The notes: generated by a model not told the origin, from the sequence alone. A stretch of DNA of 64,000 nt from Thalia democratica (GCA_965202585.1 OZ241829.1:68944001-69008000), one strand, 5' to 3'. Positions 1,312-40,261 are shown, numbered from the stretch's first letter. Translations and numbers: made by a program.

Positions 1312-2394
1312 ATGAAAAAGAGCTGCATTGCAACGCTGGGAGCTTACCTGCTCAGCAAAAAGACGGACTGCAACTTATTTCCGCAAGGTGTCCTCGCTCG
1401 CTCAGATGTAAGCGCCGGAGACGGCAACTACCCTCCGCCCCTGGAACCGAATGATTTGAACATTAGGAAGCGCCCCTTCAATACGCGGCTCTACGGCGCA
1501 CCAACGGCGCAGGAGAACGAGCAAATAACGGCCTTGAAAAACAATCCTTTCACAGAAAACGACCGCCAGGATGAACATCTGCTCGAAAGCAACTGGGACG
1601 GGCTGGAAGGCTTCCAAGAAGAACACAACTATGCGAAGTGGATGAGACTGCATCTGCACTTTTACGCGGTGGGAGATGCCGAAAACGAAACTAGGAGATC
1701 AGATCAAACGAATGCCAGGCAGAGTTTTGTAAGGGCTCTTTCTGATGGCAGGTTGCAAAACTACCGCAACACTTTTGAGCGCAAATGGTTCCCGGTGAGC
1801 CGGTTGGACCCGCCGCATTCTGACGTCACAGTGCCGCGCAGCCACGACGCCATAGCGGACTTTTGGGAGATGGAGCACGCCTTCCGCAAAGTTTGCCATC
1901 GGTTCATTTTAAACGGAACATTTCAGTTTCGGAGCGCCCGTGAAGCAAACGGGAAGAAAGTGACAAAAGGTCCGGAGACAGTTGAACACTGGATTCACAT
2001 GCCCAAGAACCTGATCGCCTACTTCGTGCAGCGGGTGTTGCAGTTCCCCCCGGAAACCTTCGGCAGGTTCAGGATCAGCGACGGCTCCCACACGCACTTT
2101 TTCATCGACTACAACGGAACACCGAGATTTTATGTCGTTGGAGAGACGAGCTACCTGCATAAAGAGTACGAAAGAGTCCGTCGTGATTTCGATCGTGGAT
2201 CGGGCGATATTGGCTTAGACGTTCCCGCCGCTAAAGAAGAAGATCTTGGCGCGGGAGACTCTCCTCAAATCGGGTCTGACAAAAATTGTGAATATGAAGA
2301 AGGTGATTGGGAAGATGAAGACGCTGATGATGAAAGCTGTACGAATGATAGAGATGATGGTGAAACAAGAAATCGTCAGTTTTCTCTGTTTTAG
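1312..2394 (+). CDS. Uncharacterised intronless family, paralog B (360 aa from conserved MKKSC start)
   Basis: Long open frame at about 50-55% GC in about 22% GC flanks; paralogous to A and C; an upstream in-frame ATG at 1267 is not conserved in A or C. Confidence 0.85.
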   Translation: MKKSCIATLGAYLLSKKTDCNLFPQGVLARSDVSAGDGNYPPPLEPNDLNIRKRPFNTRLYGAPTAQENEQITALKNNPFTENDRQDEHLLESNWDGLEGFQEEHNYAKWMRLHLHFYAVGDAENETRRSDQTNARQSFVRALSDGRLQNYRNTFERKWFPVSRLDPPHSDVTVPRSHDAIADFWEMEHAFRKVCHRFILNGTFQFRSAREANGKKVTKGPETVEHWIHMPKNLIAYFVQRVLQFPPETFGRFRISDGSHTHFFIDYNGTPRFYVVGETSYLHKEYERVRRDFDRGSGDIGLDVPAAKEEDLGAGDSPQIGSDKNCEYEEGDWEDEDADDESCTNDRDDGETRNRQFSLF

Positions 2395-3178
2395 GAAGTC
2401 ACAACTTCTGATGTATTTGTGGTACTGTGCATTTTGTTAACAAAGTTTTCAGAACTGTTGTATGACTTTATTTGTTTTGTTGATGAAAGTTGTATTTTGT
2501 TCTAATTGAGAGCTTAAAAGAACTGTTAAATTTATATGTCTAACGTTGTTTGTTTTGCAAAACATTTGTGCGTTTTCTGTCGTACCGACAACAAACATAA
2601 TAAAAACTAGTAAAGTTAATGTAGCTTTAGATTTTTGCTTTAAATTTCTATGTTAATTTGTAATGAATAATTTAAATTTAAAAAGTTATGGACGTTTACA
2701 AACTGACACTAAATTTATCTATATTATATACCCAACACATATCACTTTAAATTTTGGTTTTCTAATTAGTAAGCACCAAAATATAGCTTTTAACTTACGA
2801 TAGTGTTCTATACTTACCATAGTTTAACCAAGAAACAGTTAGGAAAAATAATATGTATATAAAATAAGCTGTAACATAAAGTTGTTGTTAATTTGAAAAA
2901 TGTATAAGCTACATATCTGTGTTTAAGTTATTAAGCTTTACCATTAATTCAAAGCAACGCCAGTTTAAGTTAGATCACTAGTTCTCCATAACAGCTATGA
3001 TATTTATTATTTTTAAAAACCGTGAGTTGCTAAAATCTTTTATTAAAAAACTCGTTTTTTCTTAATTGCAATAAACCTTTAAGTGTATATTAACTCTTTA
3101 AAGTTTAAATAACTTATAATAAATTGATAAGATGACACTATAATAATCACCGTAGAACAAACAAACAAAATAAATAAA

Positions 3179-4264
3179 ATGATGAAAAAAAGCTGCTTTG
3201 CAACGCTGGGAGCTTACCTGCTCAGCAAAAAGATGGACTGCAACTTATTTCCGCAAGGTGTCCTCGCTCGCTCAGATGTAAGCGCCGGAGACGGCAACTA
3301 CCCTCCGCCCCTGGAACCGAACGATTTGAACATTAGGAAGCGCCCCTTCAATACAAGGCTCTACGGCGCGCCAACGGCGCAGGAGAACGAGCAAATAACG
3401 GCCTTGAACAACAACCCTTTCACAGAAAACGACCGCCAGGATGAACATCTGCTCGAAAGCAACTGGGACGGGCTGGAAGGCTTCCAAACCGAGCACGCCC
3501 ATGGAAGGTCGATGAAACTGCACCTGCACTTTTACGCAAAGGAAGATGCCGAAAACAACACTAGGAGGTTTGATCAAACGAATGCCAGGCAGAGAATAAT
3601 AAGGGGTCCCCTTAACACGCTGAAAAACTACGGCGACATCTTTGCGCGCTACAGGTTTCCGGTGAGCCGGTTGGACCCGCCGCATTCTGACGTCACAGTG
3701 CCGCGAGGCCACGACGTCATAGCGGAATTTTGGGAGATGGAGCACGCCTTCCGCAAAGTTTGCCATAGGTTCATCTTAAACGGACAATTTGAGTGGCGGA
3801 AAGTTCGTGAAGAAAATGGGAAGAAAAAAACAAAAGGTCCGGAGACAGTTGAACATTGGCATAACATGCCCAAGAACCTGATCGCCTATTTCGTGCAGCG
3901 GGTGTTGCAGTTCCCGCCGGAAACATTCGGCAGGTTCAGGATCAGCGACGGCTCCCACACGCACTTTTACATCGACTACAACGGAAGACCGAATTTTTCG
4001 GTCATTGGAGAGACGAGCCATCTGCATAAAGAGTACGAAAGAGGCCGTCGTGATTTCGATCGTGGATCGGGCGATATTGGTTTGGACGTTCCCGCCGCTA
4101 AAGAAGAAGATCTTTATGCAGGAGACTCTCCTCAAATCGGGTCTGAAAAAAATTGTGAATATGAAGAAGGTGATTGGGAAGATGAAGACGCTGATGATGA
4201 TGAAAACTGTACGAATGATAGAGACGTTGGTGAAACAAGAAATCGTCAGTTTTCTCTGTTTTAA
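3179..4264 (+). CDS. Uncharacterised intronless family, paralog C (361 aa)
   Basis: Intact ORF; first ~100 codons nearly identical to B; shares the DPPHSDVTVPR and FPPETFGRFRISDGSHTH blocks and the tail. Confidence 0.85.
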   Translation: MMKKSCFATLGAYLLSKKMDCNLFPQGVLARSDVSAGDGNYPPPLEPNDLNIRKRPFNTRLYGAPTAQENEQITALNNNPFTENDRQDEHLLESNWDGLEGFQTEHAHGRSMKLHLHFYAKEDAENNTRRFDQTNARQRIIRGPLNTLKNYGDIFARYRFPVSRLDPPHSDVTVPRGHDVIAEFWEMEHAFRKVCHRFILNGQFEWRKVREENGKKKTKGPETVEHWHNMPKNLIAYFVQRVLQFPPETFGRFRISDGSHTHFYIDYNGRPNFSVIGETSHLHKEYERGRRDFDRGSGDIGLDVPAAKEEDLYAGDSPQIGSEKNCEYEEGDWEDEDADDDENCTNDRDVGETRNRQFSLF

Positions 4265-38389: not shown

Positions 38390-39175
38390 GAAGTCACAAC
38401 TTCTGATGTATTTGTGGTACTGTGCATTTTGTTAACAAAGATTTCAGAACTGTTGTATGACTTTATTTGTTTTGTTGATGAAAGTTGTATTTTGTTCTAA
38501 TTAAGAGCTTAAAAGAACTGTTAAATTTATATGTCTAACGTTGTTTGTTTTGCAAAACATTTGTGCGTTTTCTGTCGTACCGACAACAAAACATAATAAA
38601 AACTAGTAAAGTTAATGTAGCTTTAGATTTTTGCTTTAAATTTCTATGTTAATTTGTAATGAATAAGTTAAATTTAAAAAGTTATGGACATATACAAACT
38701 GACACTAAATTTATCTATATTATATACCCAACACATATCACTTTAAATTTTGGTTTTCTAATTAGTAAGCACCAAAATATAGCTTTTAACTTACGATAGT
38801 GTTTAATACTTACCATAGTTTAACCAAGAAACAGTTAGGAAAAATAATATGTGTATAAAATAAGCTGTATCATAAAGTTGTTGTTATTTTGAAAAAGGTT
38901 TAAGCTACATATCTGTGTTTAAGTTATTAAGCTTTTCCATTAATTCAAAGCAACGCCAGTTTAAGTTAGATCACTAGTTCTCCATAACAGCTATGATATT
39001 TATTATTTTTAAAAACCGTGAGTTGCTAAAATCTTTTATTAAAAAACTCGTTTTTTCTTAAATGCAATAAACATTTAAGTGTATATTAACTCTTTAAAGT
39101 TTAAATAACTTATAAAAAAATTGATAAGATAACACTATAATTATCACCGTAGAACAAACAAACTAAATAAATAAA

Positions 39176-40261
39176 ATGATAAAAAAAAGCTGCTTTGCAA
39201 CGCTTGGAGCTTACCTGCTCAGCAAAAAGATGGACTGCAACTTATTTCCGCAAGGTGTCCTCGCTCGCTCAGATGTAAGCGCCGGAGACGGCAACTACCC
39301 TCCGCCCCTGGAACCGAACGATTTGAACATTAGGAAGCGCCCCTTCAATACGAGGCTCTACGGCGCGCCAACTGCGCAGGAGAACGAGCAAATAACGGCC
39401 TTGAACAACAACCCTTTCGCAGAAAACGACCGCCAGGATGAACATCTGCTCGAAAGCAACTGGGACGGACTGGAAGGCTTCCAAACCGAGCACGCCCATG
39501 GAAGGTCGATGAGACTGCACCTGCACTTTTACGCAAAAGAAGATGCCGAAAACAACACTAGGAGGTTTGATCAAACGAATGCCAGGCAGAGAATAATAAG
39601 GGGTCCCCTTAACACGCTGAAAAACTACGGCGACATCTTTGCGCGCTACAGGTTTCCGGTGAGCCGGTTGGACCCGCCGCATTCTGACGTCACAGTGCCG
39701 CGAGGCCACGACGTCATAGCGGAATTTTGGGAGATGGAGCACGCCTTCCGCAAAGTTTGCCATAGGTTCATCTTAAACGGACAATTTGAGTGGCGGAAAA
39801 TTCGTGAAGAAAATGGAAAGAAAAAAACAAAAGGTCCGGAGACAGTTGAACACTGGCATAACATGCCCAAGAACCTGATCGCCTACTTCGTGCAGCGTGT
39901 GTTGCAGTTCCCGCCGGAAACATTCGGCAGGTTCAGGATCAGCGACGGCTCCCACACGCACTTTTACATCGACTACAACGGAAGACCGAATTTTTCGGTC
40001 ATTGGTGAGACGAGCCACCTGCATAAAGAGTACGAAAGAGGCCGTCGTGATTTCGATCGTGGATCGGGCGATATTGGTTTGGACGTTCCCGCCGCTAATG
40101 AAGAAGATCTTGGCGCCGGAGACTCTCCTCAAATCGGGTCTGACAAAAATTGTGAATATGAAGAAGGTGATTGGGAAGATGAAGACGCTGATGATGATGA
40201 AAACTGTACGAATGATAGAGACGTTGGTGAAATAAGAAATCGTCAGTTTTCTCTGTTTTAA
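39176..40261 (+). CDS. Paralog C' (361 aa), third core
   Basis: Intact ORF; carries B-like patches in the tail region. Confidence 0.85.
   Translation: MIKKSCFATLGAYLLSKKMDCNLFPQGVLARSDVSAGDGNYPPPLEPNDLNIRKRPFNTRLYGAPTAQENEQITALNNNPFAENDRQDEHLLESNWDGLEGFQTEHAHGRSMRLHLHFYAKEDAENNTRRFDQTNARQRIIRGPLNTLKNYGDIFARYRFPVSRLDPPHSDVTVPRGHDVIAEFWEMEHAFRKVCHRFILNGQFEWRKIREENGKKKTKGPETVEHWHNMPKNLIAYFVQRVLQFPPETFGRFRISDGSHTHFYIDYNGRPNFSVIGETSHLHKEYERGRRDFDRGSGDIGLDVPAANEEDLGAGDSPQIGSDKNCEYEEGDWEDEDADDDENCTNDRDVGEIRNRQFSLF

Follow-up and report, generated by a model that had tools for sequence, protein, structure and literature searches.

PGAM5 is a mitochondrial Ser/Thr and His phosphatase of animals (PDB 5muf, 6cnl, 3mxo) with a catalytic set of R104, H105, R152 and H230, plus E177 (PMC5501728). 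Phosphatase folds that have lost such residues are known from the inactive D2 domains of receptor-type PTPs (PMC7320164). In the literature that we searched, none of the PGAM5 type has been described. In the tunicate Ciona, operons are resolved by a 16-nt spliced leader (SL), ATTCTATTTGAATAAG (PMC1488885). Here we analyze a 64,000-nucleotide stretch of the Thalia democratica genome ("the window"), which carries part of a tandem gene array. The genes can be placed firmly within the histidine phosphatase superfamily, on its PGAM5 branch, of which they form a catalytically inactive offshoot, and the family is very likely an expressed and functional, dead derivative of PGAM5.

Self-BLAST of the window revealed tandem repetition with a unit length of 18,021 bp, positions 1-23655 matching 18022-41634 at 98.68% identity; the last unit extends to about 43053 (5653-6929 versus 41779-43053 at 94.6%). 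Genome-wide matches place the full array of seven A-B-C units at C5 68.870-68.984 Mb, with four further copies immediately upstream of it and one on a different chromosome, and the genome holds 26 intact ORFs in total, encoding 19 distinct proteins. Every unit contains three genes that are paralogs of one another and consist of a single exon, namely A (384-386 aa), B (360-361 aa) and C (361 aa) (Table 1). The initial annotation, made from the sequence alone, had described intronless genes of one multi-copy family, arranged as a tandem cassette with eight complete copies and one partial copy, all intact, and with in-frame indels. This description holds: the window contains eight intact ORFs on the plus strand and one A copy clipped at its edge, which in the genome is a full 386-aa ORF (L009), and the copies differ in length by whole codons (A 386 versus 384 aa, B 360 versus 361 aa). 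The open frames do not arise by chance, as shuffling one coding sequence 2000 times never left it open. Coding GC is 50-62%, versus 22-28% in the surrounding DNA. The units have diverged by only 1.3%, and in units 4-6 all B proteins are identical, as are all C proteins.

Table 1. Features of the tandem array within the window (positions counted from the first nucleotide of the window).
Feature	Position	Strand	Remarks
Array segment in window	1..43053	+	Last 2.3 units of seven; array end ~41634-43053
A-type gene, 3' end, unit 5	1..297	+	Self-BLAST aligns position 1 to 18022, within A
B-type gene, unit 5	1312..2394	+	360 aa, start MKKSC; start set by SL junction of homologous cDNA contigs
C-type gene, unit 5	3179..4264	+	361 aa; first sequence in the PGAM5-matching family profile A1
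Orphan family-gene remnant (C-terminal coding tail and 3'UTR start)	15234..15506	+	89% identical to 18205-18474
Region upstream of A, homologous to A-to-B intercistronic 3'UTR	16329..17131	+	73.8% identical to 18536-19461
A-type gene, unit 6	17161..18321	+	386-aa ORF; core used for structure model
A 3'UTR/intercistronic region	18322..19301	+	Ends at B acceptor AG (19300-19301); RNA contigs span 18240-19292
B-type gene, unit 6	19333..20415	+	360 aa; SL-bearing cDNA contigs L034/L035 colinear from 19302
B 3'UTR	20416..21152	+	AATAAA at 21139-21144; poly(A) site ~21152
C-type gene, unit 6	21200..22285	+	361 aa; RNA contig X5-22 spans 21180-21500
Orphan tail remnant, unit 7	33254..33520	+	86-88% identical to A tail
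A-type gene, unit 7	35172..36326	+	384 aa, in-frame 2-aa difference; dN/dS versus unit 6 = 0.23
B-type gene, unit 7	37304..38389	+	361-aa ORF
C-type gene, unit 7	39176..40261	+	361-aa ORF

The orphan tail fragments of the initial annotation were recovered as well, at 15234-15506 and at 33254-33520, where they match the A tail at 86-89% identity; the former matches the family profile at positions 328-364 and retains an open frame of only 46 aa. For what had been called a promoter-only remnant, the better description is a duplicated 3'UTR/intercistronic segment together with its acceptor (16329-17131, 73% identical to 18536-19301). Here AATAAA lies about 30 nt before a predicted trans-splice acceptor AG at 17130-17131, and RNA contig X6-25 spans 16500-17144. 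In each B gene the open frame also includes an upstream ATG (1267/1312-2394, 19288/19333-20415 and 37262/37304-38389). Because the ATG at 1267 precedes the trans-splice acceptor, the start of the first B gene is at 1312 (MKKSC), as initially annotated.

Single family sequences gave no match above threshold against Pfam. A profile of 17 family members, by contrast, found 236 proteins; those outside the family were all His_Phos_1 (PF00300), and the named ones were PGAM5. When PDB sequences were searched with the family profile (hmmsearch), only PGAM5 was found (E 5e-14). Alignment of profiles (hhalign) against active PGAM5s gave a probability of 99.7% (E 3e-26) over 190 columns, including the WDxNWD region. 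An AF2 model of the unit 6 A protein (residues 85-330; pLDDT 82, pTM 0.79) was compared with known structures using Foldseek, and the top 20 matches were all PGAM5 both in the PDB (best 5muf; E 3e-9 to 4e-5) and in Swiss-Prot (E 5e-10 to 3e-8); the next histidine phosphatases were separated from them by a gap of 10^5-10^6. The reduced beta2-alpha2 region limits the TM-scores to 0.5-0.69. The earlier impression that the proteins contain no known domain therefore gives way to a confident match to a well-characterised family, although the genes are an inactive offshoot of it. The suggestion of lineage restriction stands, since the close homologs, 13 in number, all stem from metatranscriptomes or metagenomes of marine origin and none from an annotated genome.

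In the window copies every catalytic residue of PGAM5 is replaced or deleted. According to the family alignment and hhalign, the R104 position is occupied by F or L and that of the nucleophile H105 by Y (in B and C) or L (in A). An invariant Ala stands where the RHG/RHS motif has G or S, so that the family motif reads R-x-L-H-F/L-Y/L-A. The segment carrying R152 (STMxRAxET) is gapped. The E177 position (LREGxP) holds T in A, K in B and Y in C, ahead of (G/W/R)FPV, and D in distant members, and the H230 position is an invariant Pro within PKNLIAY. Judging from these replacements, the proteins would be unable to dephosphorylate.

The conserved segments of the family coincide with interface elements of PGAM5 and not with its pocket. 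NWD is nearly invariant; the surrounding motif, aligned to the PGAM5 WDxNWD by hhalign, reads WNKDWD in A, LESNWD in B and C and [WFY]-[DN]-x-[ND]-W-D in homologs, with the second Trp at least 90% conserved. FPVxRxDPPHSD is the counterpart of the Pro-rich beta3-alpha3 loop and MEYAFRK that of helix alpha3, and the invariant or nearly invariant QFPPETFGRFR matches QFPPEGWLRL of the PGAM5 dimer loop (alpha4-beta5) with F244 and R251. Ring assembly may nevertheless be altered, because the beta2-alpha2 segment is missing from the window copies and B and C have L for the first Trp of WDxNWD. The N-terminus resembles those of the active PGAM5 paralogs of this genome. Its hydrophobic run of about 11 residues (Kyte-Doolittle 19-residue mean 0.65-1.1) is too short for a classical membrane anchor, and a mitochondrial location is thus suggested by analogy only. 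At the C-terminus an acidic tail of 62-88 aa has been added, which contains a conserved Cys and ends in F-x-L-F.

The family genes are transcribed, trans-spliced and polyadenylated, as seen in assembled contigs of metatranscriptomes. The B-type cDNA contigs L034 and L035 start with ATTCTATTTGAATAAG, joined at a genomic 'cag' acceptor, with the junction mapping to 19301/19302, and L034 ends in poly(A). Both are 92-93% identical to the window, so their source is a relative or an unassembled copy rather than these exact copies. Exact copies of the leader followed by GT occur 358 times in the genome and not once in the control. Contigs X5-21 and X6-31 span 20639-21144 and continue into at least 22 non-templated A residues. 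From the B poly(A) site at ~21152 to the C acceptor AG (21175-21176) the distance is about 24 nt, below the 100 nt taken as the limit for a Ciona-type operon, the C acceptor having been placed at 21176/21177 by alignment. Toward the B acceptor, other RNA contigs extend to a distance of about 10 nt or less, and the RNA runs contain the genic stretch and not the spacer. Because a few tens of nucleotides separate an upstream poly(A) site from the next acceptor, the A-B-C trio probably forms one SL-resolved operon, a reading toward which spacing and a single poly(A) site incline us slightly.

How the array arose and is maintained can be judged from its substitutions and relatives. Neutral segmental amplification, by drift or unequal crossing-over with most copies redundant or decaying, would fit the slight divergence between units, the identical B and C proteins of units 4-6 and the orphan tails as traces of past gene loss. 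However, 21 of 21 cassette genes are intact and their changes are strongly biased to synonymous ones (54 synonymous versus 44 nonsynonymous; omega 0.21, p 9e-14), transcripts exist, and the subfamilies are old, with orthologs in other plankton samples; we consider the neutral scenario quite improbable. The young copies are under purifying selection. Copies of the same type, compared pairwise, give omega of 0.14-0.37, and comparisons across types 0.5-0.8. The initial annotation had also raised horizontal acquisition, here of a bacterial or viral gene family, a view favored by the absence of introns and by a coding GC far above that of the surrounding DNA. Yet the active PGAM5 genes of this genome are single-exon too, and GC3 of host actin (0.74-0.91) is the same as or above that of the family. 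Animal PGAM5s are the closest relatives, and the family mRNAs bear both poly(A) and the spliced leader of the host. In the tree the family is monophyletic (support 99) and clusters, apart from the active PGAM5s, with its sister paralogs, further dead PGAM5-like genes located elsewhere in this genome. The genes are native to the tunicate genome; because of the spliced leader, polyadenylation, actin-like GC3 and purifying selection, horizontal transfer and decay are both rejected, and a foreign origin is hardly conceivable.

As for function, the proteins might still be enzymes with a rebuilt active site and another substrate, and new invariant polar residues (e.g. H169, D171, R164 and D257, C numbering) are indeed grouped in DPPHSD and RISDGSxT, with a His kept at the nucleophile position of some distant members (LHFHA, P0009-P0013). 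The window copies, however, possess no phosphate-binding residue of the two-histidine mechanism, the R152 segment being missing, and it is the interface elements that are conserved and not the pocket, which makes a rebuilt enzyme unlikely. Alternatively, the array could encode secreted or defence effectors, the N-terminal hydrophobic stretch being a signal peptide and the role extracellular, immune or allorecognition, in line with the immune, allorecognition or toxin analogy of the initial annotation. The N-terminus, MKKS followed by the hydrophobic run, would suit such a reading, as would tandem amplification with 19 distinct proteins, lineage restriction, and a middle region in which pN approximates pS between paralog types. 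This N-terminus, on the other hand, aligns with the anchor region of the PGAM5 paralogs of the genome, leads into a WDxNWD-like motif, a mark of an intracellular protein, and, on inspection by eye, lacks the c-region of a typical cleavage site; there is no clear signal peptide, cysteine-rich or extracellular domains are absent, and selection on the young copies is purifying, not diversifying. The conserved core had been noted correctly, and the middle of the proteins is more variable; in short middle segments pN approximates or exceeds pS between paralog types, on small counts, and their speed could reflect relaxed constraint rather than a defined function. We hold an effector role to be improbable.

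In our reading, this array in a pelagic tunicate probably encodes a lineage-specific pseudophosphatase family that derives from PGAM5 and is borne on an 18-kb unit amplified seven-fold. The proteins would consist of a short, PGAM5-anchor-like hydrophobic N-terminal helix, a WDxNWD-like motif, a reduced catalytic-domain fold and an acidic tail, and may act as non-catalytic scaffolds or regulators through the conserved PGAM5 assembly surfaces, i.e. the Pro-rich beta3-alpha3 loop, helix alpha3, the QFPPE...R alpha4-beta5 loop and beta6. Family members might form PGAM5-type dimers or rings with one another or with active paralogs of PGAM5, presumably at the mitochondria, and the acidic tail may provide a new binding function. 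The seven-fold amplification of the unit would be recent. Action through PGAM5-like oligomerisation or regulation can be proposed only tentatively, from the pattern of conserved residues.

Among the known systems PGAM5 itself is closest, sharing both fold and sequence homology. Common to both are a short hydrophobic N-terminal helix followed by a WDxNWD-like motif, DPP in the Pro-rich beta3-alpha3 loop, helix alpha3 (EAAFR in PGAM5, EYAFR in the family), and the QFPPE...R loop with beta5-beta6, the last ~50 core residues being about 40% identical as counted on the alignment. Unlike PGAM5, the family lacks R104, H105, R152, E177 and H230, the window copies are without the beta2-alpha2 segment, an acidic tail has been added, and 26 copies in a tandem cassette stand against one. 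The same genome harbors a second subfamily of dead PGAM5-like genes (L032, with the relative P0135), which consists of two tandem ORFs of 302 and 304 aa. It shares the change of His230 to Pro-Lys (CPKNF versus PKNLI in the family), the lost RH motif, the GRFxIxDxSxT strand and the single-exon tandem genes, and the tree groups it with the family; it differs in having no acidic tail, in keeping beta2-alpha2 (SDDxxCQ), in its GC3 of 0.24 and in comprising only two copies. With the SL-resolved operons of Ciona (PMC1488885) the trio shares the 16-nt spliced leader, a common gene orientation and a poly(A) site nearly adjacent to the acceptor. Most Ciona operons, however, have no intercistronic DNA and no canonical AATAAA, whereas here about 24 nt separate poly(A) site and acceptor, AATAAA is present, and the cistrons are paralogs of each other. 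The inactive D2 domains of receptor-type PTPs (PMC7320164), although of a different superfamily than PGAM5, likewise combine a catalytic fold devoid of catalytic residues with purifying selection and a presumed role in binding or scaffolding.

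Our analysis confirms the tandem cassette of three intact gene types that the initial annotation had described. In a self-BLAST, window positions 1-23655 align to 18022-41634 with 98.68% identity, so that the tandem repeat has a period of 18,021 bp, and the window carries eight intact plus-strand ORFs of about 360-386 aa that represent three types (A, B and C). When one family coding sequence was shuffled 2000 times, no shuffle stayed open. A genome-wide profile search placed the window at the end of a larger array of seven A-B-C units (C5, 68.870-68.984 Mb), with four further family copies directly upstream, two of them inverted, and one copy on a different chromosome. 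In total, the genome contains 26 intact family ORFs, which encode 19 distinct proteins. The spacer at 22.4-35 kb holds no ORF longer than 82 aa, and an Rfam search over the window returned no RNA family.

Positions and strands of features in the window and, in the last row, of a related locus elsewhere in the genome (G000)
Feature	Position	Strand	Remarks
Tail of a ninth copy, type A	1-297	+	intact in the genome
Orphan C-terminal fragment of a family gene	15234-15506		
Orphan C-terminal fragment of a family gene	33254-33520		
ORF fragment with CENP-B N-terminal DNA-binding domain	15578-15943; same place in the next unit	-	PF04218, E 2e-8
Small hydrophobic ORF	23756-24004; 41861-42109	-	unit 5 equivalent ~5735-5983
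Complete 72-aa paralog of the small hydrophobic ORF	48644-48862	-	outside the array
103-aa ORF	44772-45083	+	
247-aa ORF	58424-59167	-	
Second inactive PGAM5-like subfamily (L032)	G000:C2:26782817-26786080, ORFs 874-1782 and 2307-3221		two tandem single-exon genes, 302/304 aa

Single-protein Pfam searches of family members report no domain and are informative only via a family profile. Such a profile (A1, built from 17 sequences) retrieves 236 proteins; those beyond the family belong to His_Phos_1, and where they are named they are PGAM5 of arthropods. Against the PDB sequences PGAM5 is the sole match (E 5e-14), and a profile-profile comparison with an alignment of active PGAM5s, one of them from the same genome, yields 99.7% probability (E 3e-26) over 190 columns beginning at the WDxNWD motif. 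The AlphaFold model of the A-type core of unit 6, computed from a 134-sequence alignment, is confident (pLDDT 82, pTM 0.79), and in fold searches its best 20 matches in PDB and its best 20 in Swiss-Prot are all PGAM5, with other histidine phosphatases trailing by five to six orders of magnitude. This model supersedes a first, poor AF2 model from 17 sequences (pLDDT 49), which yet matched PGAM5. His_Phos_1/PGAM5 clusters also appeared in an ESM Atlas feature search at 0.85-0.86, a value under the reliable range and thus a lead only. The initial annotation had called the family unrecognised, which is not supported by our profile and fold searches; a “no domain” result from single-sequence Pfam can evidently be reversed by a small family profile. 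Its suggestion of lineage restriction holds, as the database relatives number only 13, none of them named and each from a marine metatranscriptome or metagenome.

The catalytic centre of PGAM5 is formed by R104, H105, R152 and H230 and completed by Y108 and E177 (Chaikuad et al., PMC5501728). The family departs from it at all positions mapped. R104 is replaced by F or L, H105 by Y (types B and C) or L (type A), with His in a few distant homologs only, the G/S of the RHG/RHS motif by an invariant Ala, E177 by T, K or Y, and H230 by an invariant Pro (PKNLIAY); R152 is missing from the window copies together with the beta2-alpha2 segment. Lacking the catalytic features of the family whose fold they carry, the A, B and C proteins are, as judged from their sequences, pseudophosphatases.

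Invariant or near-invariant columns comprise the NWD of a WDxNWD-like motif, FPVxRxDPPHSD, MEYAFRK, and PKNLIAYFVQRxMQFPPETFGRFRISDGSxT plus the next two strands. The NWD motif corresponds to the PGAM5 motif that docks on adjacent subunits. One conserved block corresponds to the Pro-rich beta3-alpha3 loop, which the WDxNWD motif orders, another to helix alpha3 at the dimer-dimer contact, and another to the alpha4-beta5 loop (F244, R251) and beta6, which make the dimer. Because of this pattern of conserved versus lost residues, we infer that the assembly function was kept and catalysis was dropped. A complex prediction for the A-core homodimer scored 0.52 (best control 0.36) and counts neither way. 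The N-terminus MKKSCIATLGAYLLSKK is like those of the active PGAM5 paralogs in this genome, with a hydrophobic run of only ~11 residues, and the proteins end in a new tail of 62-88 aa that contains 20-35 Asp/Glu as well as a conserved Cys and finishes with F-x-L-F.

The genes are under selective constraint. Segregating changes in the 21 cassette genes number 54 synonymous and 44 nonsynonymous (omega, i.e. dN/dS, 0.21; binomial p 9e-14), and copies of the same type compared across units give omega 0.14-0.37 at dS 0.03-0.06. Between the paralog types omega is 0.5-0.8, and in small counts pN comes near or above pS at about residues 100-165 (the beta1-alpha1 equivalent and the lost beta2-alpha2 region) and in parts of the tail. 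A likeness to immune arrays, as proposed on the basis of copy number and local diversification, finds no support in the omega of 0.21 among the cassette genes.

Evidence for expression comes from two metatranscriptome cDNA contigs (L034 and L035), which encode a B/C-like protein, are 92-93% identical to the window and start with ...ATTCTATTTGAATAAG; they match the genome right after a “ccaacag” acceptor at 19301/19302, and L034 ends in poly(A). The 16-mer at their start is the Ciona spliced leader (SL; PMC1488885, Table 1), and the Ciona-type SL followed by GT (ATTCTATTTGAATAAGGT) occurs in 358 exact copies in the genome versus 0 for the reversed control. The leader marks the host as a tunicate, and its occurrence in plankton sampled from the open ocean suggests that it is a pelagic one. 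The true start of B is therefore the MKKSC codon, as the initial annotation had placed it. Contigs from two marine RNA libraries, at 95-100% identity, span genes and between-gene segments, and in one of them a tail of at least 22 non-templated A starts at ~21152, which is 8-13 nt past an AATAAA and ~24 nt ahead of the C acceptor; an AATAAA also lies 30-45 nt ahead of the A and B acceptors. For a genic stretch, the same RNA runs contain 0.42 and 0.29 of the words sampled. They are missing from the runs in which the 6-kb spacer was detected, DNA runs being among the latter, and this argues against DNA carry-over. Upstream of A, the segment is a copy of the intercistronic 3'UTR with an orphan gene tail ahead of it and is covered by an RNA contig. 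The spacing from AATAAA or poly(A) to the acceptor matches that of SL-resolved operons (PMC1488885), and on balance we lean slightly towards A-B-C being one operon. The RNA contigs include no polycistronic precursor. A trio of paralogs laid out like an SL-resolved operon and later amplified as a cassette is a clean example for tunicate genomics. The SL+GT copies of the genome include runs on C26 with a regular spacing of ~15.1 kb, and others cluster on C4 at around 80.2-80.4 Mb; these look like tandem SL RNA gene arrays.

In a quick tree the family forms a single clade (support 99) next to the second dead subfamily (L032), apart from the active PGAM5s. The two L032 genes carry a WDxxWN motif, ITPP instead of IRHG and CPK instead of CHA, and have a GC3 of 0.24. 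At least five deep subfamilies of the genome are each paired with a plankton homolog, which makes the family far older than the amplification of the cassette. In Thalia democratica the expansion extends to PGAM5 genes as a whole, with at least five active-looking paralogs, namely L033 (C9), L046 (C2), L049 (C5) and two in L045 (C8; three tandem ORFs), and one further inactive paralog in which YLLVADADN replaces the RHG motif. The expansion thus amounts to at least five active-looking and 29 inactive single-exon genes. The paralogs at L033, L046, L049 and L045 each consist of a single ORF that encodes a hydrophobic helix at the N-terminus and the WDxNWD motif. A retrogene origin was considered, but since the active paralogs are single-exon genes as well, intronlessness here is not a sign of retroposition.

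Base composition bears on two further scenarios. The window is AT-rich (spacer 22-28% GC, islands 36-41%), and the family coding sequences reach 50-62% GC (GC3 0.57-0.82) within DNA of 22-28% GC. The initial annotation had considered horizontal acquisition, for which foreign composition would speak; the family GC3 fits host genes such as actin (0.74-0.91) and glycolytic PGAM (0.60), with the other PGAM5 paralogs at 0.23-0.46, and we reject a foreign origin. GC-biased gene conversion as the only source of the high GC was weighed as well; the single-copy members (chr1, GC3 0.61; revX2, GC3 0.82) and actin are equally GC-rich, so that a bias tied to expression is no less likely. GC3 in this genome may follow either expression level or gene conversion. 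The warning for AT-rich genomes is that coding sequence of high GC marks, in this case, native and probably highly expressed genes, not foreign DNA.

Each 18-kb unit also carries, just past gene C, a small ORF of 72-82 aa that contains a single, strongly hydrophobic stretch (GWPLA...VY...LPFTV...C). Pfam gave no match for it; ESM Atlas features relate it at 0.95 to clusters of 72-76 aa arthropod hypothetical proteins and at 0.85 to plant TAXIMIN. Each cassette may thus include a further gene, its fourth, on the opposite strand, or one exon of such a gene. The CENP-B-type ORF fragment is a pogo/Tigger-type transposase remnant; given its place, with an orphan gene tail on one side and the 3'UTR-like segment ahead of gene A on the other, it probably marks an insertion that broke an older family copy. 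The 247-aa ORF is Pro/Gln-rich with an acidic C-terminus and has neither a Pfam match nor an Atlas lead. The 103-aa ORF, which has no Pfam match, may be what is left of a reverse transcriptase of a non-LTR retrotransposon, namely its C-terminal part.

PGAM5, which has been studied intensively as a regulator of mitophagy, necroptosis and stress signalling, requires assembly into dimers and dodecameric rings for its activity. Inactive PGAM5-like proteins occur sporadically among unnamed database sequences, and in the literature searched on PGAM5 pseudophosphatases and on PGAM5 in tunicates no description was found. A speculative scenario, which we regard as rather unlikely, is that a pelagic-tunicate clade of PGAM5 pseudophosphatases co-assembles with active PGAM5 rings at mitochondria and, via the acidic tails, regulates PGAM5 signalling (mitophagy, stress, cell death) in a dosage-sensitive manner, the proteins being expressed from three-cistron SL-resolved operons with copy number tuned by cassette amplification. 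If this holds, the PGAM5 system would gain its first described pseudoenzyme regulator. With catalysis apparently discarded and assembly elements kept, the expressed, selected and heavily amplified family would offer a natural test of PGAM5-ring regulation by inactive subunits. PGAM5 is the closest known system, and the family has its fold and, in sequence, the layout of its N-terminus and its interface elements. In contrast to PGAM5, the family is without catalysis and, in the window copies, without the beta2-alpha2 segment, and its acidic tail, copy number and cassette/operon arrangement are new.
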